From contig NW_005434669.1 of NCBI RefSeq assembly GCF_000315625.1, forward strand, positions 904,330-968,329: 64,000 nucleotides of DNA. Reading direction: 5' to 3'. The notes under the pieces are model-generated. The model was not told the origin of the DNA. It searched no databases and saw only the letters and a list, made by a program, of their open reading frames with translations. Position numbers and translations under genes: made by a program. Within the stretch, counting starts at the first letter, position 1. The number at the start of each line of letters is the position of its first letter. This DNA is from Guillardia theta CCMP2712 (lineage: Eukaryota > Protista > Cryptophyta). This document shows, piece by piece, positions 26,571 through 56,169 of the stretch.

Positions 26571-26574
<4 letters not shown>

Positions 26575-26626
<52 letters not shown>

Positions 26627-26736
26627 GAGAGAGAGANNNNNNNNNNNNNNNNNNNNNNNNNNNNNNNNNNNNNNNNNNNNNNNNNNNNNNNNNNNNNNNN
26701 NNNNNNNNNNNNNNNNNNNNNNNNNNNNNNNNNNNN

Positions 26737-26822
<86 letters not shown>

Positions 26823-26903
26823 CAGAGAGACAGAGAGACAGAGAGAGATAGAGAGACAGAGAGACAGAGAGATAGAGAGAGACAGAGAGACAGAGAGACA
26901 GAG
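26575..26903. repeat. (AG)n/(AGAC)n microsatellite spanning a 100-N assembly gap (26637-26736)
   Basis: Directly visible in the sequence. Confidence 0.97.
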
Positions 26904-26935
26904 ATCCGATGTTGTAAGGGCGACAAAGGTTCTCC

Positions 26936-27504
26936 ATGGGTTCCGAAATCAGTCAACCGTTAGAGCTTCGAGAGGACGTCAAGTGTTTGGAATGCCGCAA
27001 AGAGACTATAGAGACCAGCATACTCTGCTGTGCTTGTCAAACTCTGCAGTTCCTGGGCTACAACGTCGCTGGCTCGAACAAGCAAGAGATCGACTACTTC
27101 CTTAACCCTCAGCTTGACCCCGTGAACCAATGTGCAAGGCCCATGTACCGAGACTACGTCTGGGACAGCAGGAGATGTCGACTGACTAGGTGAGGTTGAT
27201 AGTCTCGGGTGTCTGGCAGCAACGCTGATGTGAAAGGAACAGGCTATCTGAGCTTGATCGCGCTCGGTTAAACGACGCTAAGAGCGTCGAGCAGGAGAAA
27301 CAAGAGCTCTTGCACTCGTTCCTTGAAGCCAAGGCACTCGGATCTGTAGTTGAGACAACGCCACAACAACCACTCTCATCGACAAGGTTGGCACTGCAAG
27401 TGGAGCCCGAGAGTCAATGGAAGATTGAAGTCGACAAGCTGTCAGTTGAGAAGCTGCACGATAGCGAAGTCAGACGTTATGAGATTGTCACATTCTGTAC
27501 ATAA
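26936..27504 (+). CDS. Small (~170 aa) protein with N-myristoylation-type start and Cys cluster, 2 exons
   Basis: Starts MGSEIS; contains CLEC...CCAC. An intron (~27190-27242) joins LTR to LSELDRARLNDAK...EIVTFCT*. Confidence 0.6.
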
Positions 27505-27785: not shown

Positions 27786-30700
27786 TCACACCATCGCCAG
27801 GAACTGTATCACATCTCCGCCGGCCACCAGTGACACTCGATCCCAGTCCCACATGTCGGAGGACCGGAAGCAGGCCCGTGCAAGGTTGTTGGTGACAAGG
27901 ACGCTGCTGTTGGTCCGGACGGAGGAGAAGGAGCCGCCCACCAGGAGGCAGAAGGCAGGGAACGAGGGGTCCTGGATCTGCTGCTCGTCCTGGGCTGCTG
28001 CTGGAAAGGATGCCTGGATCATGAGGGAGAAGACTGAGCCCTCGACGGCCCCGATGCTCAGCCAGGCCCTGTCACGGTAGCGAGCTACATGCATCGCCTC
28101 CTTCCCCCCTGCCGTCGTGAAGAGCCCTGAAACAAAGAGAGACCCTCCAGCCACGGCGAGAGAGCTGACGGGGCCGTTGAGCTCGCAGTTCTCCGACTCG
28201 CACGCCACATGGTCACTGTACGAGTACAAGTCAGACATCAAATCGCATCTTGCCCCTCGCATCACTCCTTTCCTCTCGCATCACTCCTTTCCTCTCGCAT
28301 CACTCCTTGACGAGAAAGTCCCTCCACTGAGAGTGTGCTCTTCCCTCCCCTGCTCGCTTCCTCGCCCGCTCCTCGCAACCTTCCATGATGCCCCTGCTCA
28401 CCTTGTTCGTGCACATCGGCGCAGGCAGGCCTCGTCCTGCAAGCCACTCCAGGCCTGACCGTCCCACTGAGCGATGTTTCTCGACGACAAGTTCCCCTTG
28501 AACATCTTGGCAGCAAGTCAGAGGGAAGGAAAGCTACGCAGGATCTCTCACAAAGTCTCCGCCGACGTAGAGCATGTTCTCATCTGCTATCATCGCTGAA
28601 ATCTGCCCGTTGGGTATGCCCCCCCCCAACGTCTTCCATCCATTCCAGCTGTTCGCAACACGTCAATCGAGAGCCACTCCTATGAATTTCCTGAACCTGC
28701 TCACGTCGCCTTCATAGGACGCCACGTTGTTCACGTTCAGGCCGGCTAGCGTCTTGAACTTTCCTCCCACGATCAGCTGCCCTCGGAACACCGCCATCGA
28801 CTCGACGTTGCCGTTGAGCTTGCTCCTCCCCACCAACGACCACTCCTGCCGCCACGTCGTCAGCGATGAACCTTTGATAAGGGGGTGGGTGGGGGGGGCG
28901 GGGGAGAGAAGGAAGAATGCAGGTAAGCAGGAGATGAGCTGCTGAAGGAGAGGCAAGAGGAAAGGGGAGGGAGAGGAGAAGGTGGAGGGGAGGGAGAGGA
29001 GAAGGTGGAGGGGAGGGAGAGGAGTAGGTGGAGGGGAGGGAGAGGAGTAGGTGGAGGGGAGGGAGAGGAGAAGATGGAGGGGAGGGAGAGGAGTAGGTGG
29101 AGGGGAGGGAGAGGAGAAGGTGGAGGGGAGGGAGAGGAGAAGGTGGAGGGGAGGGAGAGGTGTTGCGGGATCCACGAAGGGAAGGAAGATTTATGGGTTG
29201 GACCTCCTTCATCTCATTCCATGCCACCAGCCCGCCGCTACGTAACGGGTTGCCGTGAGTCTGAAGAGCAAAGGTGAAGCTTCCTCCGTAGACAATCCAG
29301 CCCTGAGAGAGGTCAGAGACAGGCTCCTCCCCTCCTCCTCTTCTACCGCATAGCTGCTGATGGCGTTGACAGCTCCGTTGACCCCTCTTGCGAGCGTCTT
29401 GACAGCAACATCGGCGTTGTTGATGTCTTGCTGCAGGTCCCATCGGACTGCATACTCGATCCGTTTCTGAGAGACCCTCGAGAAACTCCCACCGAGATAG
29501 ACCTGGAGAGCGAGAGGGTCAAAGGTGCATGCCGGGGAGGAGAGGAGGAGAGAAGAAGGGAGAAGAGGGGAAGAGAGAAGAGGAGAGGAGAGGGGTAGAG
29601 AGAAGAGGGGAAAAGAGGAGGAGAGGAGGAGAGAAGGGGAGAGAAGAGGGGAGAAGAGGGGTAGAAACAAGAGAGGAGGAGAGGAGGAGAGGTACAAGGT
29701 GAGGGGATGGAGCCGGAGGGAAGTATTGTAAGAGATGAGGGAACGGACCGTTCGATTGGCTACACACGCAGCTCTGACCACTCCCTCGATGGGTAGGTTG
29801 GACTTCTGAACGCGCGCGACGTCTTGTTTGGAAGTTTGGAAACCTGAAGAGGAGGGAGGTGCGAGCACAGTCGAGTTGTCAGAGCACAGGACGCAGGTCT
29901 CGTTGAAAATTGAGGTGTTGTTGCCGGAGCAGGAGGAGTTGCAAAGGGTAGGCTGGTACTCGTTGGACCCAAGGCCGAAGTAGTTGAGACCAGCAGCAAG
30001 GAAGAGCGGATTGACGAAGGAGCCGTTGCCTACCCCCGTCACTGTGACGTTGACAGTTGAGTTGAGAGCGTCGCAACGGATGTCGGCGACGACGAGCAGG
30101 TCGCTGACTCCGAACTTGACCGGCGGAAAGTCGCAACGGCAGGCCTCATCCCCCTCGACAGTCGTTTGCCCGCAGGGCTGCTGGCCGATGTAGATGTTGG
30201 TGCGCACACTCGAACGCTCGCAAACGTCGGAGAGCTGATAGGAGAAGTAACGACCGTACACCATCAGAGAGCTCCCTGGAGTCGTGGAGGTTTCAGTTGC
30301 TACCGAGAAGATTCTCGGACGCGGGAGAATCTTGATCAGAACCTTGACAGGAACGGACTGGTCGTTCCCTCCGTTCAAACTCCCTCCGTCATCCTGGCAA
30401 ACAGCCTGGAAGGTTGCTGTGCCGAAGAAGTAGGGGGCAAGGTGCACGAAGAGGTTTCCGTTGGAGTCCACGATTGGGGCCACCACGAAGGAGGAGGGAG
30501 ATTCGTCGACCGCCTGCACTCGTATAAAGACCGTCTGCCAACTCTCACTGGCCGGGCCAGGCTGCACGTTCTGCACGAAGTTGCTGATGATCGTGGGCCC
30601 AGCGTCCTCGACCATGAGGTAACGCTGGAGAAAGTCACACCTGGGCGGCTTGTTGATGTTGAGGATGGAGACGTAGGCAAGGGACGTCGCGAAGCCTCCG

Positions 30701-33700
30701 GGAGGCAGAGGGCCCGTGTTGGCCATGAGGACAGTGAGGGTCACGTTGCCGTGGGAGTTGGGGTAGGAGACGAAGGAGACTCCCCCCTTGGCGTCGAAGA
30801 CTGGGTAGCTCTCGAAGAGAGACGAGCAAGCCAGCGGCCGGCCGGAGGGGAGGAAGCAGGAGATGTCAAGGACTGTGATGTTGACTGAGAAGAACAGGTC
30901 AATCTCCGGATTCCCCGAGCCCGCCGACTGGATGTTAAAGTAACTCCCTCCCGACCTGACTCCGCTCGACGTTGACTCGACGATCTCGAGGACCTGGGTC
31001 GGCACGGAGAACGTGGGCCGTTCGTTGACGAGCAGCACGCTCATGCTGAAATCTTGGATCGTCCTGTTGATGCCTCCCACCTCCGGCCCTCCAAGAATGG
31101 CGTCACCGTTGTCGGTGGCAGCCAGGGACACCTTGTAGACGCCGGAGATGTGAGGGACGAGGGAGAAGGAGAAGCTTCCTGTGGCAGTGTCGAAGGAGGA
31201 AGCAGAGAACAGGTACGAGGGTGGGAAGGTCATGCTGCCCGCGGAGACAGAGACGACAGTGAAGGAGACGATCTGGCAGGGGGTGATGGAGATGTCGTAG
31301 AGGCAGGAGAAGCCGCAGAGGCACTCGTTGATCCCAGCGCTCACGTTCGAGAGGAACTCGGTAACAAGGTTCTGACCTGAGTTCGCCTGAACCTGGACCT
31401 GTTGGGGCAGGTCGAAGGTGGGAGGATTGTTCTTGGAGATGATTGTCAGCGTGATCTGCTGAGGGGCCGAAGTGTTCTTGCTCCCAGTTAGCACTGACTG
31501 ACCCCCGTTGTCCGACACCGTCGCCTGCAACGTGAACACTCCCCGTGCTTCGGGGAAGGGAGTGAAGCTGGCAACTCCGTAGAGAAGAGTCGCTGTTGTA
31601 TTCTTGACCACATCGAGTTTCAGGGCCTCCTTGAAGAATCCTCCTGGATACAGCAAGACAGCTGTGCTCGCAGTAGAAGTTACCAGACTGCACACGGACG
31701 AAGAGTAGCACCTCCCCAACGCGGGGTTGTATGTGAGGTACCTGCAGTTGGCCTGGACGCACTTCTGCTTGCAGATGGCAAGGTTGTCGACGGTCGGAGA
31801 GACGGTGAACGAGCTGAGAAGGGCGTCTTGCTCCTTGCATTGTTTCCCAGCAGAGAAATCTCTGAAATTCCACGAGAACGTGAACGTGAGGACCTGGTCG
31901 AACTCGTTCTGGGCGCCGGCGCTCAGCTGGGAAGTGAAGACAACCGAGTGGCTCACGTCTCCCTGAACCACCTGGATCGGCGTCGCTGTGAAGTATGGCG
32001 CGCTGTTCCTGCTATCCACCACCACCTTGAAGTGTGAGACCTTGGAAACGAACTCGCCGGCGGGGAGGAGCTGCAGGACTTGGGGGGTGTAGGCCCTCCC
32101 GGAGTAGAAGATCGGATCGAAGTAGGCGACCCATCCGTTGGCGAGCCCGTCGTCTTGCAAGGAAACGGAGAAGAGAGCCTCTCCGTTCTCCCCCTGGGCC
32201 GTTTCGAACACCAGGAGGCCGTCGCTGGTGATGTAGGGAGACAGGCTGAACAAGTTCTCGTTGCTCGTCGAGATCTGCGTCACGGTGAAGGTGACGAGCT
32301 GGCAAGGGAGGGGCTGTGAGAACTCAGTGCTGAACGGGAGGGCCCATCCCGGCCAGATCCTCTCCCTCCTGCATAGCGACTCTCCCTTGGGAGGAGACGC
32401 TCGCACGTGCAGCTCGTTGTCACTGGACAAGGAGACGTCCTGTACGCCCTTGAGCCCGACGATGCCTTGCCAGAAGGAGAAGAGGGTGCGGCTCATGGGC
32501 AGTGGGTCCTGCGACCATGTCTGGATGAACTTAAGGCTGTTAGATTGAAACTTGAGGGCTACAAGCGCCGAGTCTTCCGATGCGACGGCGTAGACAACCG
32601 ACGCTGTTGTGTCGGCCACAATCGATCGCAGCCCGTTGAATCCCACGATCTCTGGGAAGTCCCACTCGACGCTGACGGCTCCTTGGGTCAAGCTGGAGTA
32701 GAGCAGGAGCATGATGCCGTCAACTATCGCCAAGTTGATGGAGCGAACGTAACCTATGGGGAACCTGAGGGCTTGCTTGTGCTGCGTGAGAAAGGAGTCG
32801 GGAACCGGAACGCCCCTGAGCCTGACGTTGGTGGCGTCCGTCAAGGAGAGCATCTCGTCGAACTTTTTCGAGATCCTGTTCCACTGCAGAACGCCGCTCT
32901 GAACCTCAACGCACGGGGTTGCCTTGCATTCGCAAGAACTCGTGTTGAGGAGCAGACACTTGGTTTGTGCGAAGGCGAGGTAGTATTCTCCTGCCCAGGC
33001 AAAGAACCTGAGGGCCGTGACATCGGTGATGGGCGACATGGAAGAAACATGGTTGTAGAACAAGTCAAACTGCTTCTGCTTCCACTCATAGATCGAGATG
33101 GGGTTACATCCAGCTACCCCCGAACTCCCGCACTGCATCGAGATGGCTATGTAATCCTTCCCATTCACACTGAACGCTTCCACCCCCGTCATGGCCTTTC
33201 CAGGGATCACCTGGATGCTGTAGAAGGCGCCGGGGTTGCCGGTGAACTTGTTGAGGCCGCTGCTGGAATATCGGTAGACGTTGACCGAGGCGTTAGAGAC
33301 GCTGCCGTAGTTGACCACCAGCAGCAAGTCGATCGAGCAAGTCACCGTCGGGTCAGAGTCACACGGCTGGCTAACCGTCATCGTGCTAACGTCGTTGGCC
33401 CCGTCAGTCTCCAGAAGTTGGAACGTTGCGAACCCAGACGCCTTGGCCGTCGTGTTGTCAGCCACCTGAGTGAAGCCGGACGCCTGCCAACGGTAGAGGT
33501 ACGAGAACCACGAGTACCCGTTGCCGGTGTCCGGCCACCAGCTAGCAGCAGCCAAGTAGCTGACGTCATCGATCTTGAACTCGTGAAGCCTTCGGATCGA
33601 GTCGTGCGGGTTGCCTGTCCAGGGAGGAACAGGTCGGTCTATGCCGGGGATGACGAACTCGTTGGACGAGGAGCAGGAGCCGTCGGCGCCGCATGCAGGA

Positions 33701-36700
33701 GGGATCGAGGTGCCCCCCGGCAAGCTCTTGGGGAGGGTGTTGAACAAGTAGAACTTCTGCAGTGTCGGGTTGAACCTGTACATCCTCGATGCCCCAAGGT
33801 CGTCCGAGATCACGATGAAGTTCCAGCCGACGCCCTCAGAGTCGTAATCGAATATGCAGGCAACGTCGGTGGCTGAAAGCTCGGAGGAGAACTCCGAAAG
33901 CTTCACAAATGTCCCGTTCTTCCACTGGTAGATCAGCACAGGGCCCGGGGTCTGGTCGCCAAACTGCCCGGGGACCACGAAGAACAAAGTCTTGTCTTCG
34001 ATCTGACACATCTTGGCTGTGTAGGCATGACTGCTCCAGGGATAGCCATCACTGAATCGAGCAGGAAACGAGCCTGACAACCATTCAACTGGTTGCCCGA
34101 TTGGCTCTGACACTGTCTTGCTGGTGTAGAGAGGGGGAGGGGAAGGGAAACGATCTATCAACCTCTCGCCGCTGTAGACGTGATCCAAGTACTGCAAGCC
34201 GTTGCCTTGCACTTTAAACGCAGTTACGGCTTTGTCGAAGAGGGAGACTGAGAACAGGTAGCTGTTGGAGATGGCGAACGCACGAGCCCCTCGGAGCCCG
34301 TGCTCAGCGTCGGACGCTCTCACGGTGGTCACAAGGGACAGAGTTCCTTCTGAACTGATGGAGAAGATATGGATTGCTCCATCTCCTTCCCCCAATGAGC
34401 TGATGCAGTACAGGAGGCTGCCGGACACCTCGATGTCGCTCAGTCCGTTCATGTTCGGGTTAAGCAGCCCCGAGATGGTCGACTTGTAGTAGAAGGTGCT
34501 GGAGTACTCGAACAGCGCGATCGATTGACTGTCATAACTCGCCACGTACACGAATGACTTGCTAGTTGACACATCCTTGATGGCCACCTTGACCGGCACC
34601 TGCATCCCAGTAACCCTCTCTACTCGTGAGCGGTACAACTTAGACGACTGCCCGTCGCAGCTGCCTGCCAGCAAGAACGAGACGTTGTTGGGCGTGTCAA
34701 TCACGAGAGAGTCGCAGGAGGTGGTTGTCAGGATTTGACCGCCTGCCACGTCCTTGGGGAGGGTGTTGATGTCGTTGGACTGGAGGAAGAGCGTTCCGTT
34801 CCACCTGTACATGATGGAGGACTGGTCCTGCAGGTTGACGACTAGGTAGTTGCTGCCAAAGAGAGCGAACGGCCTGGCTGTCATGACGCCTTGAACTCCG
34901 AGAGACTGGATGGGAAGGAGCTCTGAAGAAGCTGCATTCCACTGGTACAAGACCGAATCGCCGAAGGCGATACTGGCGTAGAAGACGTAGAGGACGTAGT
35001 CGGTGCAGATAGGCTCGCAGATCTCAACGCCGATGTTGATGCTGCACACTTGGCGACAGGTAGGGATCGAGGTAGTGCTGACGCTGTAAACGTCGTGGAT
35101 GAGCGAGAGGTGGGACTGGTCCACCTGCTGGATGGAGGAGAAGTCGAAGAACTTGAAGACTTGGGGGAGCGTGCCGTAGCTGTTGGTGAGGGGGTCCAAG
35201 TACAAGGAGAAGAAGAGGAGGTAGTGGTCGGGCTGCTCGAAGATTGCAAGGCCCGATGCCCCAACCACCGGGATTTTCAGCTCGTCATTGAGGTTGACCG
35301 GACTGAGTCTGCTTACCACCGGCGAGGGTGTCCAAGATTCGTCTTGCTGGCTGAAGTATCTCGGAGCAGCCTGAGAAGGAGCGTCTATGACAGGAGCAGC
35401 GATCACTAGCGCTTTCTTCGTCACCGCACACACTCCGTTCTCCCAGTAGACAACGTTATCGTAGGTCGAATTTCCTTGACACAGAGGGTCGTTGCCCAAG
35501 GTGAAGCAAGGAAAGTTGTGTTTGTCTCCTCCGTTGCACTTGTAGGAGCCTTGAGCCCTCACCAACCCGAAGCATTCTTGTAGGCTGCTACCGAGGCAGG
35601 TCGCTAGTGTTGGGTCCCAGGTTGCGTCGTTGGGAAGGGAAACTTTCAAAGTAGGATCGGCGAGGTAGCCTTGCCCATGGTTAAGCAGCTTCGACCCCGC
35701 CATGACGGCGCTCTTGTCGAGGGTCACCTGGGCCTGGAAGCCGCCAGGCTCAACAGATCCGAGTTGGAAGGAGTCGATGGAGGGTGAGAGGCGGAGACAG
35801 TTGCGCCAGTCTCCCAGGAGGCATCGGCAGGTCTTGGAGTCCAGAGGGAGCAGCAGAGGCTCACAGGCCATGGAGACATTCGGGACATCAAGTTCAAGGA
35901 TGGTACCGTTGGAGTCGACACTCTTAACGTTGACGACAAGCCCCTGCTTGACGTCCTTGCGATTCAAAGCCGTCAGATTCATCACGAACTGCGAGGTGTT
36001 TGAGCAACCGATAGTTGAGTTTCCTATCACTTCCACCGTCTGAATAAGCCGAGGCCAACAGAACTTGGTAGGTTTGACAACCCTGAACGAGGTGATCGAA
36101 TCGTCCATCACTTGGAATGTGTTGGAGTAAACCGGTTTGATGTCAAAGTCGGGCAAGTAAGCATCCGTCTGCTCGATACTCACATTTGTGATCGTACCCA
36201 AGAAGCCACTTGTCACAGACCCGTCTACGACGAAGCTTCCCTTGAACGAGTTGATGTTGGTTGACCCTGTGCGCATACGACAAGCGTCGCCTGCACTTCC
36301 CTGCTTGCAGAACATTCTCAGGTCGCCATTGATGTACCCGCGTCCTCTGTCCATGACTTGAATGTTATCAACCGGCAAGGGGCCATTCCATTTCAAGATC
36401 TTGCTGTTGGAGTTGTAATTGACCACTACCACGTACTGTACCTCCTGGAACTTGAACAAGACGATGTCCCGTGGAGCAGAAGTGGGAATGCTCTGGACAT
36501 GGGAAAGCAGATACGAAGTTCCCGTCCTCTTCACCTCGAAGATCGGTGACAGGGTCTCATGCTGTAGACCATCCCAAAAGTTCACCCCGAACAGGTAGTC
36601 CCTGCTGCCGATCGTCTCAAACCTGATGTTGGAGCTCCCGAGAATGAGCAGCGATGAGTAGGAGCTGAAAGGCCTCTGGACGTCATCGAACACCCCAAAG

Positions 36701-39700
36701 TCCATCCATGAAGCCACGGAGTTGTCTTTGGTCTGCGCAATGTTTTGGATCCTGGTCAGCGACCCGTCGCTCTGAAGCGCCAGGGACTTGGAGTGCGAGA
36801 TCATGTATATGTAAGTGATGGAGCCTGAGATTGCGTTCGAGTACATCAAGTTAGTCGTGCAGGAGCACTGATCCTTGGTGGTGGAGAAAGGACCGCAGTT
36901 GGCAACATTGCAACAATCTGCCGACACGAACCAGGGCTTGTCCGCTACTCGATAAGGACTATTGCGATCGAAATACCCACAGATGGCAATAAGACAAGCA
37001 CGGCTCCACAGGTACTGCTCGACACCTCCATTGACTTCGACGATAGACAAGATGCTTGCCCTCACTCCGAAGTTCCAGGCTCTCTTGGTGGGCAACATGC
37101 AGTTCAGAGCGTTCACAGACTCCATGGAGCAGCTAGTCGTGATGCTCTGCTTGCCGTCCACACCCGTAAAGGAGAACATCGCCCGATACTGGCTGTTCTG
37201 CGCGAACAGTCCTCTTACAGTGAAGACTGCGTCTAGAAGACTCTCAGTGTTCACGTAAGTAATGTTGGGTGACGTTAGCGGAACTTTGGGCTGGCAAGAT
37301 GGCGCGTCAATGTTTCCCTGCCCTGTGGACTTGTACCAGAACCTGTCAGGCACGTTCTTCAATGGGAAGATGTACGAGTAGTTCATGTATCTCTGCATGA
37401 TGTAATCGGCTGGCATGGCCTTCTTCATGATTCGGAGATGTTTCAGCAATCCTGCATGCTTTGCTACGGAAGGAGGATTCTTCTCTATGTATACTCCGAT
37501 CCCCACAAGCGTGTTCCCATCAACATCGTTGTTGTCAAGGCATCCTTTGAAAATTCCATTGGACCCACAGGGGCACTTTTTCTTCTCGCATTCAGCATTT
37601 GGGCAGGTGCAGAAATCCGGGCAGGTGTGGTAGGCCGCCGGATATATGATATTTCCGCAAGAGCAGCTTTCATCGGGGCAGACAGCCGTACACATGTACT
37701 GCTTCAACTTCTCCTCCCCATTCACGTAAATTCTCGAGTATTTTCCGTCGTAGGTGGCCACGTAGTGAATCCATTCGCCTTCCTTGAAGGTAACATCCGA
37801 TGTCCACTCCACGAAGGTGACGTATCCGATCCCGGGCCAGACGCCCAGCGACTGGAACCCCTGGTAGTGGGAGATTTTTGCGTCCGGTTTCTCTACAGCA
37901 AGAGCGAAAGAGAAAATTATTACCCCTGATCCTTCAAAGCGCCAGGTCATACGGACCCCCTTTTCACAGCCACAGTTGCTGGTCCGAGTCCAGCTGCACT
38001 TGTTCCTTTGCATAGCACTGAAGAGAGCATGCTCGATCTTAAAGGACGCGTTCACTTGGAACAGAGCTTCTCCATAGAATTCCTCCAGCGGCAGTTGCGA
38101 GGTGGCAGGGTCTCCGGTCACAACGTCATCGATGTTGTCGGTGATCAAAAGCCCCGTGTTAACGTTCGCGTCAAACAGAAGCGCCTCCACGTCGTCGACA
38201 GAACTCAGGAAGTTCTCAATGCTCAAGGACTGCTCCCTGACTGTATCGAACTCGTTGGTGGCATCCTTGCAGGCAGGGCCGTTGGTGCCGAGGGTGCCGA
38301 GGAGCACCGCTGCTCCTAATCGCTCTGAGTTGTCTCGAATTGTCGCTGGGGAGATCCAGGTAGGATACTTCTCGGCGCAATCGCTATTAATTATCCTTTC
38401 ACGTTCGTACCGGCACACCCGGCTGTCGCAGGTGACAGACTGATTCACTTGTTTGCCGAACTTGTTTACCTTCATCGGGCCCTGCGCCTTGTTCACGTAC
38501 ATGGACCGGGAGCTGAACTCCCAGTCGCCCACCACGTAGTCCCAATCGGATTGGGACTCGTACGTGAGGTTGTTGGAGTAGAGCTCGCTGTTGAACAGGA
38601 GCTCGCACCCTGTAGCTGAGTAGAACGATCCGGTTACTGAGCTGTCGAACGATCCCAGTCTACAGACGTCATGCAGGACATCGATCGGATTGCCAGCCGT
38701 TGACTGATCTCCGGTGTCAACTTGAGAGTTGGCAAGGAAGCGGACACGGTCCTGGAGAGGAAGTCAAACAAATCAATCGAGCAGTCAAAGATGTCAAGTC
38801 AAGTCAAGATTGCCTCGTTGTGCGATCTTCGGTCAACAAACTGAAGTCCAGCTGTCGTATCATCCCATAGGGAGATCGTGTTGGTCACTGGCTCCGGAAA
38901 GACGGAGAAGCCTGTGTTGATAGTCAACCAGCGTTAGCGCATCGATTCGTTGGTGACCTCTCCCCGACTTAGTGCGACTCGACGCGAACTCCAACCCGGC
39001 AGTCAAGAACGTGTTGTCAGGCAGACTCTGCATGAACTGAAGGTCCCCTTCTTGCAAGCTGCTGCTCGAAGGAGCTGTGATCACTGTGTCCGTTGGCTCC
39101 GCATAATCCTCCGCTGCTGCTATTGTGGTCGCAAACGAAGAAATCGCGTACCGGCCGCCATCCTCCACCACTCGCACTTGCACGAAGTTCTCGGAAGCGC
39201 GGGGCCCGACAAGGCTGGTACAGGCAGAGGCGTTGGAACTGTGGAAGGCGAGGGAACTGTGGGAGCGTCAGGGAGCGGTGGGAGAAGCAGCCGCTACGTA
39301 CCCATCCATCATCATGGAGAGGTTCGACTTCATGGGGATGTAAGGGTACTGCGGGCAGATGCAGTTGGCAGACTGGATGTCAACAGTGTTGCACGTGACG
39401 TTCCATGAGAGCCGGAAGCCTGTGGAGCCGTCAGTAGGGTCAACAGGCAGGAGCTGTCGTACCCGGCCTCGCGTCTGCTGGCTCGACATATATCTCCGCG
39501 CACTTGGCGTCGGAAGCATTGCTGCCATACGTGCCGACGCTCTTCAGCGAATGGTCAGAAGATCAAAGAACCGCGCTCGCGCCCTCACCATTTCCTGCTG
39601 ATAGCAGCAGGTCGCGTTCGACGTCAAGCTCCCATCGCAAATCTTGCAACCTGCATTGGTCGTGAGGAGGAGGATCACTGAGAGAATGTGTTTTGACCTG

Positions 39701-45700: not shown

Positions 45701-48700
45701 CCGTCGTCAGTGGTGAGGATGACAAACGAAGAGTTCCCGGAGAACATCGGGGGTACAACCAGCGTGATGTTCCCGTTCTCTCCGATCTTCAAGTCAACAT
45801 CGCTGCCTTCACCCGCAGTCACTGAGAAGCTGACATGCTGGAAGGCCTCGTAAGGCCCAGCAGAGAAGTTGGCAACAGCAGGAAGGATCCTGAGGCCTCC
45901 GCAGGAAGTCCAAGGGCTGCAGCAACCCGTGTTCAAGTTGCAGGAGAGGTCAAGGGAGGGGCAGGGAGAGCAGCACCACTCCTGCAGCATCATGCCTGAC
46001 TCCCGGGTGTCGTAGGGGTTGACCCACAGCCAGACGTCGCTCGGCAGACCGACGGATGGCGCAGAGTTGACGGGGATCACAACAAAGGTCAGCCTGTGTC
46101 CTGCCGTGTAGCAAGTCGCGTTCTTGTCCCCGTTGTCGCATCCCGTGACTTCTACCGTGCTGTTGCCGTAGGCGTACGGGCGGATCACGAAGTAGAAGGT
46201 ACCGTTGGCAAACCCTTGAAGGTCCTCGAACAAAGTCGAGTTCTCCGGGCTGACGTGGAAGTGGAAGGAGAGAGACTGGTTGGCCTCGTCCCGTGGACCC
46301 ACCAAACTCCCGCCGAACTGAGCCCAACGGAGGTTCTTGAAGAACGAAAGCTCGCTCCTTCTGTTGTAAAACTTCTCCTCAACGATCACCAGAGGCTGCA
46401 AAGTGAAGTCGAACGAAGGAGGGTCATTCACAGCAACCACCTCGAGCCGCCAGACATGAGGAGTGGAGGTAGCCTGATCTCCCTGCCTCACTACTCCTCC
46501 GTCGTCCTCCAAGGTTGTGCTCAGAGTCAAGTTGCCGTTCTGATTCGGAGCGAGGAGGAGGTCGAGGGTTCCATCTGAGAGGATGGACAACGCAGACAGG
46601 AGGTTCTGGTTCCCGGACAGGTAGGTCACATGGAAGGTGACTAACTGACTGTCCTCACTACTGCTGCAAGGGAAGTTGGTGTAGTTGGAGTTGTTTGCGA
46701 ACATGGAGTCCGAGAACAGGCCCTTCTTGATGTTCCCTGCGAACTGATGCACGCGATACCTTGGAGCGTCCTCCAGCACCTGGACGGTCTGCTGGGCCAG
46801 GGAGAATGAAGGAGGCTGGTTGATCGGGTTGATCAGGATGTCGAAGTAAGACCAGGGGGTCTTGAACGAGCTGGTGACCAGCCGGAACATCATTGAGACT
46901 TTTCCGTGCATCCCCTCCCTCAGCACGAAGGACAGGGAACCATCGACATCGATCACGGGCTGCTGCCTGAAGCAGATCTTCCCTTCCTCGCTCTTCGGCA
47001 TCACCTCGAACGAGCCATCCGTAATGATCCGCTGGTCGCCATAGGTCGGCGGTGACGTCGGGGGCAGAGTGGGAGAGGCCCGTGGGTCAGCGAAGTAGAG
47101 GAAAGTCTGAGACTGGCCGACGACGACGTTCTCGTCAACCTCGACCACGTCCTGCTCTTGCATGGCTGGCTGAGAGTCCGCATTCCCCCAGAGGAGGTAA
47201 AACCGTTTGACCTGCGAACGATCGTTTCCTCCCCAGGCAGTTCCTCCGTCATCAAAGAGCTGGACGTCAAAGTATGCGCGGCCGAAGACGAGCTGGTTGG
47301 GCTCGAAGGAGAGGTCCCCAGTGTCGCTGATCCTAATCCCAGGGACGGTCTGCAACTCAAGTCACTACTAGAATAGAAGAAAACAATGTACTCCGCTCAC
47401 CTTGAAGAAGATTGGGGCAAGCACAGTCACCACAAACGTCAGCCTCTGGTCAATTTCATCCACTGCGAAGGAGTTGTCCTGGGTCCTTCCCTTGTACAGC
47501 ACTCCCGTCCAGTTCTTGATGACAAACTCCGTGGTGTTCTCAGGGAATATCTTGTTCTGCCCCACGAAGTAAGGAGCCTTGTTAATCTTGCGGAAGACGA
47601 AGATCAGATCCTGCACTGTGTCCACAACATAAGTCATGTTCTCCATCCCGACGCAGTAGGAGAGGACATCCACCCTTGCCGTCCCCTCCAGGTCCTCCCT
47701 GTAGCTCCCCCACAGTGAAGTTGACCAGGTTGGAGAGGTGCAGGTGACTAGCTCGGAGGTGGACGAGTCCGCGTTCACCGTATGGTCAAAACTTCCAGTG
47801 GAGTGAAACCTACACCTGTACCTCCACTCGCCGCATCCCGCGTTGTTCGTCCACGTCATTGGGCCCCCAAAGCCGTTCCCTACGATAGTGAGGACAGTAC
47901 CTCCGAGCTTGTCGCCGTAGGCCGGGAACGAGGCCCGGGCCCGAGGGATCAAGAAGATCTTGACGATTTCGGTCGCGCTGCTCTGGATAGGCAACGAGTT
48001 CCAGTAGACGACAAGGGTTGTATTAGCTGCTGCTTCAGTCCACGTTGGGACAGGGCAAGTCAACGTGGAGTAGGAGACGACGGTGGCGAGGGAGCTTGAC
48101 TCTTGTGACCCGTAGAGGATCCCGCACGTGTAGCTGTCCATATTGCTGAATCCAGTCCCAAAGACGGAGATCGTACCTCCTTGATAGCTGAAGATGGGCT
48201 GAGCGGGCGTTAAAATCTCGTCCCAGATCGGCCACACAGTCAAGGTCAAATTCTCCTGCAGTGCCCAGCCGTCAAAGTCTTCAGGAGTGTAGGAGGTCGT
48301 GTAACAGAGGCGGTACTGCCCGGGATACATGAGCTGAGTCGTGATGGACCGGGAGGAGTCGACGAGGCTCTCCGAGACTCGAGACACGCAGTCGCTCCGA
48401 GTGAAGGCTATGCGAGTGAAGGGAGAAGGGGAGGCTTGCTTAAAGTAGAGCTCAACTTGCCTTGCAGCGCTGAAGGATGTGTTAGTCAGGCAGTAGTCGC
48501 CTGAGCACTCGACGCTGGTGATAGAGTCAGGCTGAGTGGGGGCGAGAACCTCCAAGTTGAAGCGTTGAGGCACCCATACATGCTCCCCGTGGACCTTGTA
48601 AGTGCTGTAACAGAGCGAGTAGTTCTTGGCTGTGTCAAAGATTGCGACATAATCCTGCCGGAAGGTCTCCAGGGAGGAGCCAAAGACGGAGGTCAAGTCA

Positions 48701-51700
48701 GTACATTGGTCGCATCGATCGTTCATGACGATCTTGCAGACAGCCACGTTCCCCTTGGAGTTGAACTGCTGGCCGTAGAGCTCAACGGACATGTTGAGGC
48801 CCAGAGGGAAGAGGAGGATGTCGTGCTCTGTCGAGTTGATGCCGAACCGCAACAGTATCATCTCTTCGATCGACTGGGGGGCCGCAGCTCTCAAGGAGTA
48901 GAAGGCGAAGTCAGACTGCTCGAAGAAGCGGTCTTGACCCAGGAACGAGTAGCAGAGGACAAGTTGCCTTTCAGTCTGCTGTGCGTTCACGCCAGCGGGC
49001 CAGGCAGGGACTGTCAGGGAAAAGCCTTCCTGGTTGAATTGCCCGACGTCAGAGAAGTCAGGAAGCCCACAATGCTCAGGGTCTGCGAGCTTGAGGACGG
49101 CGAACTTTGACTCGACAACTCCTTGACACGAGATGTTGATAACCTGCCCGTTCTCCCAGCTGGAGGGCTGGCAGGCGGTGAGGGACGCCGAGTTGGCCTT
49201 GTCAAACGTGTCAAGAAACACGTAATATCGACTGGACGGCAGAGCCTGAGGCCCAGGAAGCCAGGTCCCATCCTCTCCGTTCTGCGTGCTGACACAAGTG
49301 AAGTACTCTCCGACGCTGGGGAGGGAGGAATTGATCGCAAAGGACTGATTTCCCTGCCCTTGGTCCAGGACCTGGGTGAAGGTCCTCCCATCAGCGCAGT
49401 CGGGCCTTCCCAGCCATGGGTGAATGTGAGTCGAGAAAGCGACGCGAGAGTTGTAGGAGAAGTCGACTCCTACGAACTTGAAGTAGTAGTGCACGTCCGC
49501 GGGCAGCCTCAGGCGGTAGCTCCCGTCTAGCGGGTCCTCTTCACCTTGGATGCAGATAGAGCTTGCCTCGCCGCGCTGGCATGCGCTCTGCTCAGCGGAA
49601 GGGTGGCAATGGCAAACTTGCACGTTGCTGACGTCACCGGGTCGAAAGGCATCGATGACCTTGAGGCTGACCTGGTTCTGAAGGAACGACTGAGAGCTCT
49701 GATCGAAGTAAGAGACTGAGTAGCAGATTCCGTACAGCCCAGGTGTTGTGAAAGGCTCGAAAGTGGCGTCGGAGTAAGGAACGGCGCCGTCAGACCCTTG
49801 GAGAAGGAACTCAGCATTCGATGCTTGAGAGCAGTTGGTGTTTGCCTCTGCGAAAGCAACACGAGTGAAAGGAGAGAAGATCGCCCCAGTAAACGTCATG
49901 GCCACCACGTTGCTGATCGTGATACGGTCAGGGAAAACTTGTGTCAGAGTGCTTTCATTCGCTTGTGGGAACACGTAGAGGTAGACGTCTTGCAGGGAAA
50001 GGAACGACCCTGGATCGGTGCCGAGAGTAGAGTAGCAGACGGTATAGTTGCCGACACTGGCGATAGAGAATGTGACAGTGGGGGTGTCAAACTGGACTTT
50101 CACCTCCGGGTCGTGGCAATTGACGTCGGTAGAGAAGCCAAGGTATGTGTAGTTGTCTGCATGCAGGGTAGCCCCGGTTAGCAAGGGCAGGAGGGTGAAG
50201 GTGGGACTGAGTTCCTGTGAGATCCTGTGCGGAGAGATGGATAGAATCGAGTGATGGCTGGCCTGGTAGATTGCCTCTATGACGATTGAGCTCTGCCTTA
50301 TGAAAGAACCGCCAGGCGAGTCTGTAGAGTAGAAGAGATACCAAAGGCCAGGCATCGTGAGGTTGACGTAAAGGTTGTTGGTAAAGAAGTTGAGAAAGAT
50401 CCTGGAAGGGCACGAGATGTTCATGCTGCAGCTCTGGTGCAGGAACAAGAGGCCAGAGTAGGAGGAGAACAGGTTCCTTGGCTCGATGTGGAGGGGGAAG
50501 GAGATCAGCGACGGGATCCTTCCCGGGGTCACTGACTGCACGCTAGCCGACGAGGCCTGTGCGATCACCGTGAGAGTGACTGGCTGCTTCTCAAACGACT
50601 GACCGCTGCTGGTGCTGTAACACACTGACAAAACACCCGGAGAGATTTCAGGAGGGATAAAAACTTCGAAGAGCGCGGTCGAGTTGCCGCTGCGCGAGAA
50701 AGCGAGGGAGCCAGGCTCGCAGTCCGAGGTAGAGATCGCCAAAACGCTGAAGACTGAAGGAAAGTAGCCTGAGAAGTTCAAGAGGGCAATCTGACTTGAG
50801 ATGATGATCCGCTCGCTGATAGTGAAGATGCTGCTGTTGCTTGCGGGAGAGAAGATCTCAAGGAGGACGTTCTGCTGCAGCAACTTCGCGCTGTCCCCTC
50901 CGTTTGTCTGGATCAAGATGTCATAGAGACCGACAGCGTCCAAGACCATCTCGACTCGGTTCCCGTAAATCGGGAAGGAAGCGTTAGTCTGACTGCCACC
51001 TTGCAAGGTCATCGTGAGGAAGTAATCTCCTGGCAAGGGAGGAAAGATATTGTTGGGCAAGGTGAGATTGATCGCATATCGGGCCGGGACCTTGGAAGGG
51101 AAGACTGCGGTCAGAATCTGTGAGTTGCCTACCACGTCGATCTGAACAGACTGGAGGATCCACATGGAAGAGGCGTCAGAGCCGTTAGTGCTGTAGCAGA
51201 CGTGGTACATCCCCTGAGGGAGCTCGACCCGCACGGCAGGCACTTCCTGCTCCGTATCCAACGGCATCACGAGGGTGTAGCTTTGAAAGCTGCAGGAGGA
51301 CGTGTTCGTGAAGGCGACAAAGGTCAAACTTGAGTAGCGCGCTCCGTACAGCATGATGGTGGCGTTGGACGTACCGAACCTTGAAGGGACGATGCTGGTG
51401 ATGGAGGAGTTGGTGGCTGGCGGCTGCGAGAGCACTTTGACCTTTTTTTGGAGCACGTACGACGAGCTGGTAGAGTAGCAGACGTAGACGAGCTGGTCGG
51501 GCCCAGCAAAGTCATTCATGACGTAGGCAACCACCGAAGTGGTCAGGTCAGCCTCCCAGGCAAACCAACCATCGCAAGATTCGACGAGGCTGAGAGCAAC
51601 TTTTGACTGGACGCTGCGAAAGGCTCCTTCAAAGGTGACGTCAAGGCCTTGATACTTAGGGATGGCAAGGATGAAGTAGCCAGACAAGAAATCGATTGAG

Positions 51701-54700
51701 TCTTTGACAGCGAATTGGATGAAATTGATAGGTGCTGAAGGGATTCCAAGGATGTCTGTGGCGTTGGATAGGAGGCGGAGGTTGTAGAGGTTGACAGAAG
51801 CTGGAGGGAGATTGGGCGTTTGACAGAGGATGAGAGAAGCGTTCACGAAGGTGGAGGGAGACGGAGGCAGGTTTGTGTTGTCAAACACACACTGGATCTC
51901 CTGCTCTGCAGAGAAGCCTCGTCCAACGATGGAAACAGTGTATGATTCATTCCATGGGACGATCTGGGGGCTGACAGAGAGCCAATGAGGGAGGAATTGA
52001 AAGTCTTGATAAGACCCATAAACCATGCCTCGACGTTTGATGGCGTACGTGCAGGCACTCGACTGGCTGGCAGAGTCCGAGCAAGATTGGTTGACCCAGT
52101 ACACGCTGAGGTTCACACGCTCCGCGTGATACTCCACTCCCCATGCTGGGACTTCGCACAGCAGACTGTCAGCAGAGACTTGGGCAACGGGTGACCACTG
52201 CTTCCCTGCCTGCCCCAAGAACTGGCACCTATATGCCTCTTGCGGCATGAAACCGAACCCTGTGACCGTGAGCAAGCTTCCGCCTGCCGCACTCGCATGA
52301 GAAGTCGCCTCGATCCATGTTGTGAAGAAGTAGTACAAGTCTTGACCAGCAGGCCCGATGAAGCTGATGTCTTGACTCGCGTTGAAGCTGCACAAGCTCT
52401 GACCTTCACAGCCCTGAGATGTCTGGTGGACTTTCACACGCGTGACAACCCCTTGCCTGAAGTCAGTCGGGGTAAAGGTCCCAATCAAGCTTTGGTTGTA
52501 AAGGTTTGGAGTTCTGCAATAAACCTCACACGCCCCGTTGTTACAGTGTGAGTAAGACTCCGACGATGACGTCACCTTGGTGTCCTGACCGTAGATGTCG
52601 AAGACACATTCATAGCTCGTGTTGCAATCTGCTGCGATTCCATTCAAGATCAACATGACGTGCTCCTCCCCAAACGCTTCGCCTTGGCTCGAGTTGAGGT
52701 TGTGCCATGAGCTCTGAAGACAGAAACTTCTCTCGTCCCCATGAAAGTTGATTGCAACCAAGTCACGGAGGACAGTCACGTCCACCAGGATGTTGCAGTC
52801 CAGCCCTGCGGGGAGCTGGCAAAGGATCTCATTGAAACTTGGGACGAACGCCGTCGTGGTTTCATTCCAAGTTGCAGATGTGAACTTGCAGGCGTACTGC
52901 GCTTGGTAGGGCGAGAACCCATACCCAAAGATGGAGATGTTAGTCGGAAAAAAAGGTTTGTTGAGAGGCAAGGAGAAAGAATTCCAGACTTCGGACACGA
53001 TGAGAGATGGAGATGTACACGAAGTGAACTCAGAGGGCAGGAGAATCCCACACTCCGGGTTGACGAAGGGAACAATCTCGTTGTTCCACAAAACTTGCAG
53101 GACAAGCTGCTCTGACAACGTGTAGTTGCCAGACCTGGTAGATTCGACAAGGAGAGGAGACATGTGGCAGATGAGCCTGTTCGGTGAGGGAGCAGATGCA
53201 CTGAGAGAGAGGTTGACCGATGATTCAGCTATCCGGGTGAGCTTGCACGAGAAGAGCTCCGAAGTTTGATCGAAACCGTATCCTTCCACCTCGAACCAGG
53301 CGCTGCCGTCGGCAAGCACCTCCGTGACATTCTTTTCATACCAAGTCGGATAGATCCGAAAGCGAAACGACTCTTCCTTGTCAGCAGGAACATAAGGGAT
53401 CGTCTCCAGATGCTCGTTCTCAAGCGAAAGCGTCATCTGTACCTGGCAACTTCCCACACTCTCGCACGTGCCGCCCCCTGTACAATCACTGTGCTCAAAA
53501 CAAGCATGACCGGTATTCGGCGCTTCGCAGAAGCATGTTCCCCGGCCACCGTTGCATATCGGATAACTGATGTTTCCCCTGTACCCACAGGTGCAGTAGC
53601 CATTGCAAGTGCCTGTTCGCTGGTAGTAAGTCCCTCCCTTGCACGTCCCAGCGCAGTTGGAGTGGATCCTTTGCATCGTGCACCAGGCGTTGTTCTCACT
53701 TCGCCCATCGCAGACGGGGTAACTTGCGCTGTCGTTCCAGCTGGGAATGCTGCACACCACCTTCGGCGAGACGCTCAAGAGATCAGGGGAGACGAAGGAT
53801 GGTTTGGAAAACCCACTGACACTCTGCAAGTACCTCCCATCCTTGGAGGTCAAGGAGAATTTGCAACGATAGGCGTCACCATACTCCTCGTGGTCGTACA
53901 CCAAAGTGCCGGCAAAGAATCTTGGAGAGGACTTATCTCCCCACACTTGAACCACCTGAGGACTATTCGTGGTGAAGGAGCCGATGGACAAGACCACACC
54001 AGGTCTGACGGCAAGGAAGCCATCAGAGAAGACAGATGCGTTCTCACATCTGGAAGCTCCGCATCCGTTGGAGCAACAATCCATCTTGTTCTGCGCGTAT
54101 GACGCGCAGCAAGTCGACCCCGGTGCTTGCACGTCTTCCTGCAGGAAATACTTGATCCCCTTCGAGTCAACTACCAAGATGGTGTACGTCCCGCCAGCAG
54201 TAAAAGAATAAGGCTCAGAGAACCGACACATTGTGGGGTCTTCGTATACGCATGTCCTTGAATCCCAGACAAAATTGTCCAACGATTGCTCCTTTCCTGT
54301 TCCCAGGAAATTTCCTCGTGCAATTGAAACATAGATGCCGTCATCAACTCTTTCGACTCTTTCTAGTCTCAGTGCCACCAGAGTAGAATTTCTCTTGGCA
54401 AAGACTTCAAACATCGATCCTGGCAAACTTGTATCCCCATTCCATGCCATAGGCAGGATTTGACGCAAGGTCTGATTGACTGACGTAGTCAACGACAGGT
54501 TGTACTCGCCCACAAGACCAGGATTGACTCCCCTGGTGTACAGCTCGATCGGAGTTCCACCAAATGCCGGAGCTTGAGTTATATTCACGGAATACCAAGA
54601 ACCACGACTGAACTCATGCGTGATCGAAGGAATCGTCCGGTTGTAGCTGGACCACAAGGGAAAGTACTGCTCGTTGTCAATCCGAAGCGAATCACGCTTG

Positions 54701-56169
54701 ATCGGACTATCAGTCATGTTGGTTCGCAATACTATCATGCCAATGCTGATGGGATCTTTGTTCGGGTAAAGTGCTCCCCATCCGGCGATTCTCTTGTGAG
54801 ACTCAGAGAAGAAAGTATCCCGAGTGAGCGAGTGATTGAGAAAGCTATACAGACTGACGGTTGGCATCCAACCGCTCATCATCGAAACTTGAGAGACATT
54901 ACATGTAGCGTAAGTACTGTTCTTGATCATGGCTTTGATATACAGTCTTTCTTCTGGGAGCCATGAGTAACCCGTGGAATTCGACCGCCAAAGGGAGCAA
55001 TAATAGCTATTTTCAGCAGAGAAGCCAGCACCAAAGATTTCAAGGATACTCTTATCATTGAAGGTCAATGGCGACACGTGGGAGATCTCAGAGGTGAAGA
55101 AAAGCTGAAAGGACGACTCGTGCATACTTGCTCCGTCCTTGCTCCAAAGTTTCAAACTCACAGCAGCTGGTGCCCAATCCCATCGCGGGATCGGGCATGA
55201 CAGGTACGTAGAGTCAACGAAGAGACACGGATTTGAATAGATGTAAGTCTGATTGCTCTGGTCCCAAAACTTCAACTTGTAAAACTTCTGGTCGCCGTAA
55301 GACCGCAGGAATCCGGCCCCACGGACTGCAAGAGTAGCCCCTCCCCCCACGGGAGAAACGCACTGAACCAAGCCTGTCTCATTCTGGCATTCAACGACTT
55401 CCTCCTGTGTCGTTTTCGAGCCCTCATAGTCTGACGGCGGATATATCATCTTAGGGACGGAGCCTGTTATCCTATTTACAATAGACATGTATTGGAAAGA
55501 CTGTGAAGTGGCATCCATCGGAAGTGCGCCACCACCTTGCCTTGTGATGGTAATCAATACTGCTCCCTCTCCAGAAGACGTTGCGGGGCTGACAACATAC
55601 AGCTTGTGGCTTTCCGTGACATTGGCGATTGAGAAATTATGACCGGAGCCATATTCGCTGTAGGGTTTTGAGAAATCTACAACATAGACAGACCCGACTA
55701 CGAACCCGCACCCTTCGACTGTGACCGTGGTACCTCCCAGGACACCTGAGTACTGAGGGAAAGGTAATCTCCAAGCATTCGACGCCCCTCCACCCGCACA
55801 GTTCAGGCCGTCCCCCAATGTTGGTTGTGCCGCGCCATTCAGAACCAAGAAAGTAAAAATCCCTAGAAAGAAAGACCATCGCTGTGGCTCAAACCGAGTA
55901 TAGAATACAGCATTATCAACAGAGGAACGTGTACAGTTTCCAGGCCGACATGCCTTGCATCTCTGAGACCTTCGAGAAACATGGCTGGTCTCCGAAATCC
56001 ATGCTGGTATCCTCCGTTTTGAATTTCCCTCGTCATCAATCGCACATGGCGATTGTATGCTGGTGCGCCGAGATTGAGTCATACCTGTTCTCCCTCCCTC
56101 GCCTTCCTCTCTTTCTCTAGCTCCTCGTCTTAGCTGCATGCTCTCTCTGCTGCCCTGAGACTGCTGCAT
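27786..56169 (-). CDS. Giant (~8,800 aa, estimate) multidomain cell-surface protein: N-terminal hydrophobic anchor, IPT/TIG, novel Cys-containing repeats, cadherin-like repeats, FN2, LamG, EAR/EPTP, lactonase-like blades, PAN, Rax2-like propeller
   Basis: The four long ORFs (2933, 776, 1222, 3108 aa) and the small ORFs between them are linked by short introns that restore frame, e.g. FFK|TVPG (~47397-47350), GSQ|YVKF (~45082-45031) and HNE|DRV (38813-38752). Repeat units run across these junctions. Final stop after QFLAMV at 27786. Some small central exons were only approximately resolved. Confidence 0.85.
28963..29160. repeat. 23-nt G-rich minisatellite (GGTGGAGGGGAGGGAGAGGAGWA) in an intron of the giant gene
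   Basis: About 8.5 tandem units. Confidence 0.92.

Follow-up and report, generated by a model that had tools for sequence, protein, structure and literature searches.

Does the run of long stop-free frames on the minus strand of a scaffold of the cryptophyte Guillardia theta CCMP2712 represent a row of adjacent genes or the pieces of a single one, and what kind of protein would it encode? The frames lie in a stretch of 64,000 nucleotides (nt) of contig NW_005434669.1 (positions 904,330 to 968,329 of the forward strand), called the window here and used for all numbering; they comprise 2937 amino acids (aa) at 56181–47371, 778 aa at 47361–45028, 1225 aa at 45046–41372, 264 aa at 40824–40033 and 3184 aa at 38763–29212, and smaller frames follow as far as 27789. 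The reading that these long open reading frames (ORFs) form one gene is well supported by comparative evidence of four independent lines, and the 22-exon gene probably encodes a surface or extracellular rod of ~8,900 residues that would serve as a far-reaching filament for adhesion or in a matrix. The coordinates of all features are compiled in Table 1.

Gene model and comparative evidence for a single gene

Our splice model places one minus-strand gene at 27786–56169, with the ATG at 56169 and the stop codon ending at 27786. It contains 22 exons and 21 introns with a coding sequence of 26,721 nt, and the predicted product of 8,906 aa has a mass of ~976 kDa before glycosylation, is acidic (pI 4.87) and carries 248 Cys residues and 156 NxS/T sequons. 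The original prediction, made from the letters of the window and a list of its ORFs, was that the long ORFs splice into one frame of ~8,800 aa that includes two ~9-kb exons and is rich in sequons; the model agrees with it in approximate length, in its many sequons and in its two largest exons, exon 1 with 8,769 nt and exon 16 with 9,003 nt. The gaps between the ORFs start with GT and end with pyrimidine-AG, and a TGAC-type motif is found 10–25 nt before the AG. Twenty introns are of the GT-AG type and one is GC-AG, and 18 of the 21 are 43–62 nt in length, the three long ones measuring 186, 246 and 358 nt. The GC-AG intron (62 nt, 38813–38752) was accepted at a place where no GT donor preserves the frame and the alignment with the orthologue described below. 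The introns at 40179–40132, 39836–39780 and 29748–29503 are invisible in the ORF map because they are in-frame and free of stop codons. The long introns (29748–29503, 29203–28846 and 28401–28216) are full of CT-rich microsatellite or short tandem repeats, and two of the three are spanned by long spurious ORFs.

Automatic gene models restricted to GT donors misplaced exons in 40045–38751 and near the 3′ end, and they were replaced by a model in which these exons and the 3′ end were rebuilt with an environmental orthologue as guide. A scan for concealed in-frame introns added one more intron. Eight further in-frame introns considered in the big exons were dismissed, as the alignment with the orthologue continues through them without gaps. 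For annotation, the locus illustrates that a GC-AG intron and three others, in-frame or filled with repeats, escape an ORF map. The queries for searches were exons, tiles or the uninterrupted frames of the orthologue, and the spliced protein in its joined form entered only local scripts.

The environmental orthologue is a metagenome contig (ERZ21849172 contig_20342) with a run of frames on one strand that encode, in order, 3204 (TIG), 206, 1344, 226 (fn2), 150, 2673 (EPTP), 438 (EPTP) and 709 aa, followed by smaller ones. Residues 133–8777 of the model are collinear with nt 780–30170 of this contig on one strand, at 25–44% identity. A single open frame of 2,673 aa in the contig corresponds to G. 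theta exon 3, the twelve small exons and exon 16 together, and BLASTP matches the spliced exon 3-to-16 peptide to it in a single alignment (1,637 columns, 33% identity) that spans twelve predicted junctions, the later-added intron lying in the same stretch. Moreover, full-length copies of the cadherin-like repeat described below cross the exon junctions 1/2, 2/3, 3/4/5, 5/6/7 and 7/8/9/10, as located with a repeat hidden Markov model (HMM) on the final gene model.

A second comparison was provided by two metagenome contigs from PRJEB17505, which are 93.5% identical to window positions 41081–39324 and 96.6% identical to 47862–44198 at the nucleotide level; the samples therefore contain an organism very closely related to the sequenced strain. 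Exon mismatches amount to 175 in 4,933 positions with no indel, compared with 57 in 489 intron positions, a 3.3-fold higher rate, and the five indel events, each of 1 or 2 nt, are all inside predicted introns, including one in the hidden in-frame intron 40179–40132 and one each in introns 1 and 2. For the 93.5%-identity contig, Fisher's test gave p = 1.2e-5. By codon position the differences number 31, 26 and 118, and the predicted frames show 109 synonymous versus 55 non-synonymous codon changes, which points to purifying selection.

In view of these comparisons it is very improbable that the large ORFs represent separate neighbouring genes of one family instead of a single transcript. Such an arrangement would suit a Hanusia phi transcriptome protein that stops just past the end of exon 1. 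The gaps between the ORFs, however, are only 43–62 nt long and hence offer no space for promoters or untranslated regions, they contain conserved GT, branch-like TGAC and CAG signals, the domains interrupted at them are made whole by splicing, and the frame of the orthologue stays open across 13 junctions. In addition, intron 1 is 52 nt long in the 96.6% relative versus 51 nt in G. theta, so that the flanking DNA frames differ, and both of these are under purifying selection.

The H. phi protein (2,921 aa, from the EukProt transcriptome) is 71% identical to the model over aa 36–2923 and has, after its own start Met, a hydrophilic tail and a hydrophobic segment much like those of the model. It terminates 11 codons past the exon 1 donor, and its tail resembles read-through of a GTGAGC donor. 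Given that it spans exon 1 and then an intron-like tail, it demonstrates transcription of exon 1 in the sister genus and not splicing of junction 1/2. The protein has the exact form (Met, the whole of exon 1 and a short unrelated tail) that would be expected of a truncated isoform made in addition to the long product, in which retention of intron 1 (47400–47350) ends translation 10 codons past exon 1 and yields 2,933 aa, a rod that keeps the TIG and Ig-fold repeats and lacks the heads and the cadherin-like arrays. We consider an isoform of this kind unlikely, given that short-read assemblies often retain introns from pre-mRNA and that the read-through tail is not conserved, the one in the 96.6% relative stopping after four codons. 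It would also be compatible with the single-gene explanation and not exclusive of it.

Modular architecture of the predicted protein

The N-terminal third of the product is encoded by exon 1, on which Pfam TIG (PF01833) scored 87.3 bits against a cut-off of 20.9. Three tiles match TIG independently overall, with E values of 7e-7 and 3.5e-14 in the first block, and an HMM built from the protein itself recognizes 10 TIG-like copies in exon 1. The TIG scores and the Cys pattern at aa 806–909 are in accord with the expected order of IPT/TIG repeats, Cys-rich insert and, further on, a second TIG set. Between the two sets lies a ~96-aa repeat (rA), nine copies of which were detected by a self-built HMM at a regular spacing that implies ~11. 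No Pfam family matches rA, profile-profile comparison revealed no similarity to the protein's own TIG copies, and no paralogue was found elsewhere in the genome (87,145,349-bp assembly, 669 contigs). The AlphaFold2 model of rA (predicted local distance difference test, pLDDT, 73.5) is a seven-strand sandwich whose best structural match is the PlexinC1 IPT domain (Z 6.1), and its structural neighbours are IPT/TIG and FN3-type domains with Z of 4.6–6.1, a similarity at the level of the common fold only. Foldseek returned no match at E ≤ 0.001 for either the rA or the cadherin-like model. By its structural model rA is an immunoglobulin (Ig)-fold repeat, and it has no sequence family beyond its cryptophyte and environmental orthologues. 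The 11 novel repeats originally proposed for this region are therefore novel in sequence, with nine copies seen by HMM and ~11 by spacing, while the fold itself is of the Ig type.

The central part of the protein is dominated by a cadherin-like repeat (rB), which occurs in 19 copies in total (HMM, final model) distributed over two arrays, the first of which also holds ~500 aa of more divergent repeats. A profile of 13 copies reached only E 0.28 to cadherin-23, and a profile of 32 copies, with paralogue copies from other contigs included, matched protocadherin gamma-A9 (E 1.7e-6), EP-cadherin (E 0.0039) and further protocadherins. The consensus carries VNxPPxF and DDGG motifs. The repeat unit was modelled by AlphaFold2 with a pLDDT of 89.5; the folded unit is out of register with the repeat as delimited, its first 21 residues being the linker of the preceding repeat. 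Exhaustive structural comparison of this model yielded mostly extracellular cadherin (EC) domains at Z of 5–5.9, and the database homologues of exon 7 carry Big_9, Cadherin_5 and Cadherin_4. The protocadherin profile match, the EC-type fold and the Big_9/Cadherin_5 homologues lead us to call the repeat cadherin-like, with bacterial-type families as the nearest; they do not demonstrate that it belongs with the cadherins of animals.

Each array is interrupted by a putative insert. In the first, fn2 (PF00040) scored 19.8 bits against a cut-off of 22.2 with only profile positions 1–19 aligned; the insert has four Cys residues and the CxFPF..G..Y..C hallmark, and a weak fn2 match is present at the collinear site of the orthologue. 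In the second, PAN_1 (PF00024) scored 19.1 bits against 21.4 and appears as an insert within one cadherin-like copy. Both arrays had been foreseen, and they stand on 14 copies with a protocadherin profile match and on a half copy plus four copies with an insert visible in the alignment; the FN2 and PAN identities that had been given to the inserts remain under the Pfam cut-offs.

Between the two arrays is a head of ~2,190 residues. Laminin_G_3 (PF13385), with its profile aligned in part, scored 32.9 bits on a tile and 27.9 bits on the whole exon against a cut-off of 27.6, and EPTP (PF03736) scored 64.1 bits on exon 16 against a cut-off of 21 (E 1.2e-17), with 33.6, 28.6 and 28.4 bits on tiles. 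Four EAR blades are recognizable by sequence, at aa 6323, 6805, 6852 and 7418 in the numbering of an earlier model, and Lactonase reached 16.7 bits, below its Pfam cut-off. A single-sequence search of the head region against PDB sequences, LGI1 included, found no match at E ≤ 0.1, and an Atlas search of the region gave no usable match. Thus LamG is present as had been anticipated from the translation, and a TIG domain directly after it could not be confirmed. Of the two EAR clusters with lactonase-like blades, the EAR assignment is above the cut-off, whereas the four blades fall in three places, in which two clusters cannot be made out, and the lactonase match is sub-threshold.

The head is flanked by half-repeats of the cadherin-like type, covering HMM positions 2–52 before it (weakly, as 2–31 plus 29–52) and 56–108 after it, and joining the two flanks raises the score of the cadherin-like HMM by 5.5 bits. 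In the environmental orthologue the corresponding positions are 13–58 and 56–108, and the head is of nearly equal length. These flanks hint that the head could sit within a loop of a single cadherin-like repeat. We put forward, tentatively, a design in which the ~2,190-residue head is nested in one ~110-residue cadherin-like loop and the rod continues past this side-mounted head, a design that would be conserved across cryptophytes in a protein that would be a cell-surface component, for example a secreted polypeptide of high molecular mass in the surface periplast layer. If this is true, the LamG and EAR pairing of animal TSPEAR and ADGRV1 would be placed in a distant algal lineage.

The C-terminal exons are homologous to the 592-aa and 137-aa frames of the orthologue. 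DUF5122 scored 18.9 bits against a cut-off of 27 (E 0.0018), and Rax2 scored 11.8 bits against 28.8 (E 0.15) on the uninterrupted frame of the orthologue. The proposal of a TIG domain followed by a terminal Rax2-like GGxF propeller is consequently retained for the TIG-like start and for six GGxF blades recognized by eye, with both propeller families under their cut-offs.

Table 1. Positions of exons and predicted protein features in the window; all lie on the minus strand
Feature	Window position	Strand	Basis
Exons 1–5	56169-47401; 47349-45085; 45031-41393; 41345-41215; 41169-41031	-	orthologue-guided splice model
Exons 6–10	40983-40853; 40804-40180; 40131-40045; 39995-39837; 39779-39698	-	orthologue-guided splice model
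Exons 11–15	39650-39589; 39541-39463; 39419-39302; 39256-38958; 38911-38814	-	orthologue-guided splice model
Exons 16–19	38751-29749; 29502-29347; 29302-29204; 28845-28697	-	orthologue-guided splice model
Exons 20–22	28648-28552; 28505-28402; 28215-27786	-	orthologue-guided splice model
Intron cluster, n = 13, each 43–62 nt, exon 3 to exon 16	38752-41392	-	orthologue-guided
Hydrophilic basic N-terminal tail, 97 aa	55879-56169	-	translation; similar tail in Hanusia phi
N-terminal hydrophobic segment, aa 98–114, signal anchor or signal-peptide core	55828-55878	-	hydropathy scan
First IPT/TIG block, 8 TIG-like domains, aa ~140–1500	51670-55752	-	Pfam TIG, self-HMM
Cys-rich insert in first TIG block, aa 806–909	53754-53443	-	Cys pattern
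~96-aa repeat rA, ~11 copies, aa 1553–2640	48250-51513	-	self-HMM
Two further TIG domains, aa 2660–2845	47635-48192	-	Pfam TIG (E 3.9e-9), self-HMM
First cadherin-like array, ~110-aa repeat rB, 14 recognizable copies, aa 2848–5335, exons 1–10	39720-47628	-	repeat HMM
FN2-like 4-Cys insert in first array	43480-43364	-	fn2 sub-threshold, Cys pattern
Head, ~2,190 aa, aa 5484–7672	32419-39093	-	Pfam, half-repeat flanks
LamG/ConA-like domain	37998-37420	-	Pfam Laminin_G_3
EAR/EPTP blades, three places	36501-36385; 35019-34798; 33225-33139	-	Pfam EPTP
Lactonase-like propeller stretch	34563-34207	-	Lactonase sub-threshold
Second cadherin-like array, half copy plus 4 copies, aa 7673–8351	30382-32418	-	repeat HMM
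PAN/apple-like insert in second array	31785-31681	-	PAN_1 sub-threshold
C-terminal part: TIG-like start, Cys-rich stretch, GGxF blades	27789-30318	-	translation, blade motifs
TIG-like start of C-terminal part	30318-30034	-	translation
~Six GGxF blades, exons 16–22	29793-27789	-	seen by eye in translation

Outside the gene, an assembly gap of 100 N is found at 26637–26736, ~1 kb downstream of the stop codon and within a plus-strand ORF (26482–27105). Another plus-strand ORF (56562–57535) is arranged head-to-head with the giant gene, ~390 nt from its ATG, and a divergent promoter region would be common to both.

N-terminus, membrane topology and secretion

The translation begins with the ~97-aa hydrophilic N-terminus that had been described for this locus, followed by a single hydrophobic segment (aa 98–114, 55878–55828), and as had also been stated there is no C-terminal membrane span: a hydropathy scan of the protein gave no other candidate membrane segment, and none at the C-terminus. 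The segment is kept in three orthologues, and in Hanusia and the environmental orthologue it occupies the equivalent site, immediately ahead of the first TIG domain. An anchor or signal at the N-terminus, with no C-terminal membrane segment, is thus a well supported prediction. An internal hydrophobic 17-mer at aa 4830–4846 (~41680–41630, exon 3) was considered as a membrane span and rejected; the hydrophobicity is absent in the orthologue, and the 17-mer is therefore more likely to be a strand buried in its domain or an insert specific to the lineage. From these features we infer either type II anchoring or secretion of the protein, and if the segment is a signal anchor the 97-aa tail is presumed to be cytoplasmic.

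The same gene could also encode a protein whose hydrophobic segment is a cleaved signal peptide and which, once released, self-assembles into the periplast surface layer or another extracellular matrix, a reading that we regard as possible and rather doubtful. It agrees with the short core of the segment (~11 strongly hydrophobic residues), with the small residues that follow as at a signal-peptidase site, and with the environmental orthologue, in which a Met is only ~30 residues ahead of the segment; in G. theta and Hanusia, on the other hand, ~85–97 residues separate the segment from the first Met and no other Met lies closer, which is long for the n-region of a signal peptide. We also counted in its favour the work of Perasso et al. 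(1997) on the periplast, as it is referred to in PMC6212826, where it provides a lead for the secreted-layer reading rather than evidence for it. Against it, there is no link of the giant protein itself to the periplast.

Relatives, known systems and the proposed role of the protein

In order to identify relatives, the Ig-fold repeat block was searched against 1.84 billion representative proteins with a threshold of E ≤ 0.001. The 22 matching proteins include named ones from Hanusia and Rhodomonas, and the others that were looked up are metagenome or assembly proteins, one cluster consisting of proteins of 3,147–3,281 aa on metagenome contigs of 18–40 kb. The best match is the H. phi protein described above, and Rhodomonas salina contributes two transcriptome fragments that match the block. 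The orthologue search that had been recommended for Cryptista thereby recovered H. phi, R. salina and the environmental contigs. A search for homologous proteins with residues 200–1800 of exon 16 gave no match within a length window that left out shorter and longer kin.

The cadherin-like repeat also occurs in giant open frames on other contigs of the genome, and these frames constitute, together with the present gene, a multigene family of giant proteins. The frames have lengths of 6,055, 5,288, 3,955, 2,950, 2,909 and 2,876 aa and more, and the contigs that carry them include C72 (304203–311801), C24 (581477–598582), C7 (253454–262140), C18 (832497–839100), C75, C35, C16 and C61. The similarity of the paralogues to the head is low, 26–33% over parts, and they are without the ~96-aa Ig-fold repeat block, which within the genome belongs to the present gene only. 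In the literature on the modules of the protein and on cryptophyte surface proteins we found no description of the protein or its family. The earlier statement that no such protein has been described is in keeping with this and needs the qualification that orthologues and paralogous giant genes exist, all uncharacterised. The architecture is therefore new, its component domain types are known, and it represents an uncharacterised family of giant genes.

Among known systems, vertebrate ADGRV1 (VLGR1, the Usher 2C protein) is likewise a giant chain of β-sandwich repeats, interrupted by a domain of the LamG/pentraxin type and by EAR/EPTP repeats, which in ADGRV1 form a propeller. The chain of ADGRV1 is extracellular, its repeats bind calcium, and the protein makes long fibrous links at the surface of cells. 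Its repeats are Calx-beta, and it ends in a GAIN/GPS site and seven membrane helices, in contrast to the TIG, lineage-specific Ig-fold and cadherin-like repeats found here; no tile has a Pfam match to Calx-beta, GPS or a seven-helix receptor domain, and the hydropathy scan shows no cluster of membrane helices. TSPEAR and the LGI proteins combine LamG/TSPN or leucine-rich repeats with seven EAR repeats, and the giant protein resembles them in its EAR/EPTP match over the cut-off and resembles TSPEAR in the LamG-type domain upstream of it; unlike the giant protein, with its four recognizable blades, they are small secreted proteins of 550–670 aa. The long cadherins (cadherin-23, protocadherin-15 and FAT) share the tandem ~110-aa β-sandwich repeats and a linker motif resembling calcium-site motifs, but the similarity is remote, and the giant protein has neither a C-terminal membrane span nor a cadherin cytoplasmic domain. 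Its only conserved hydrophobic segment is that at aa 98–114, which differs from the type I topology of cadherins. Giant bacterial adhesins (RTX or type I secreted, with Big or cadherin-like domains) are rods of many calcium-dependent Ig-like repeats with binding modules near the far end, much as predicted here, and the cadherin-like repeat is nearest to Big_9 and Cadherin_5. In contrast to them, the present gene is eukaryotic and spliced, its product has an anchor or signal at the N-terminus and sequons for N-glycosylation, and Pfam detected neither RTX repeats (HemolysinCabind or related) nor a type I secretion signal in any tile. The predicted mode of action of the protein is nevertheless like that of other giant repeat adhesins.

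An extracellular rod that carries globular heads in the distal third is, like the module order, a prediction well supported by the comparative evidence, and it agrees with the original proposal of a filament with heads of a ligand-binding type at the distal end. In the mechanism that we propose, the single N-terminal hydrophobic segment would route the protein into the secretory pathway and then either stay in the plasma membrane with the N-terminus inside (type II) or be cleaved, leaving the protein free to assemble into a surface layer, and all of the sequence after the segment would be outside the cell. The ~40 or more β-sandwich modules (TIG, cryptophyte-specific Ig-fold and cadherin-like) would build a rod of ~150–200 nm that calcium bound at the cadherin-like linkers probably stiffens in sea water. 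The distal third would present the binding modules, namely the lectin-like LamG domain with the EAR propellers, the PAN/apple insert and the terminal six-blade propeller. A long rod with distal binding modules would suit a cell-surface filament that reaches far, for adhesion or in a matrix; periplast fibril, flagellar hair and tether are candidate roles that, like the length of the filament, are suggested by the predicted architecture.

Several points weigh against this interpretation. The single-gene reading rests on the comparison of sequences; among the sequencing runs listed as containing the region none is recorded as RNA, low-depth genomic contigs that include the introns making up the other matches, and one raw RNA run, of which ~6% was read, gave 0 reads on 36000–42000, which is no test of expression. 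The H. phi protein reflects expression of exon 1 and not its splicing, apparently through a retained intron. The structural matches of the modelled cadherin-like repeat are only middling (Z 5–6), and single copies reach no Pfam cadherin model, apart from one copy in 32 that matches Cadherin_4 at E 0.0048. The hydrophobic segment, of only ~17 residues and preceded by 97 others, resembles neither a typical signal peptide nor a typical membrane anchor. Finally, we infer all of topology, glycosylation, calcium binding and rod length from the predicted protein.

Cryptophytes possess a distinctive proteinaceous cell covering, the outer components of which, as far as we are aware, have yet to be assigned to genes. 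The conserved surface protein of ~1 MDa predicted here and the giant family to which it belongs would be candidates for components of this covering or for cell-cell or cell-particle adhesion. The gene further shows the combination of LamG with EAR, and predicted long cadherin-like rods, both usually treated as traits of animals, in a lineage far from animals, and this bears on how adhesion modules spread or arose repeatedly.

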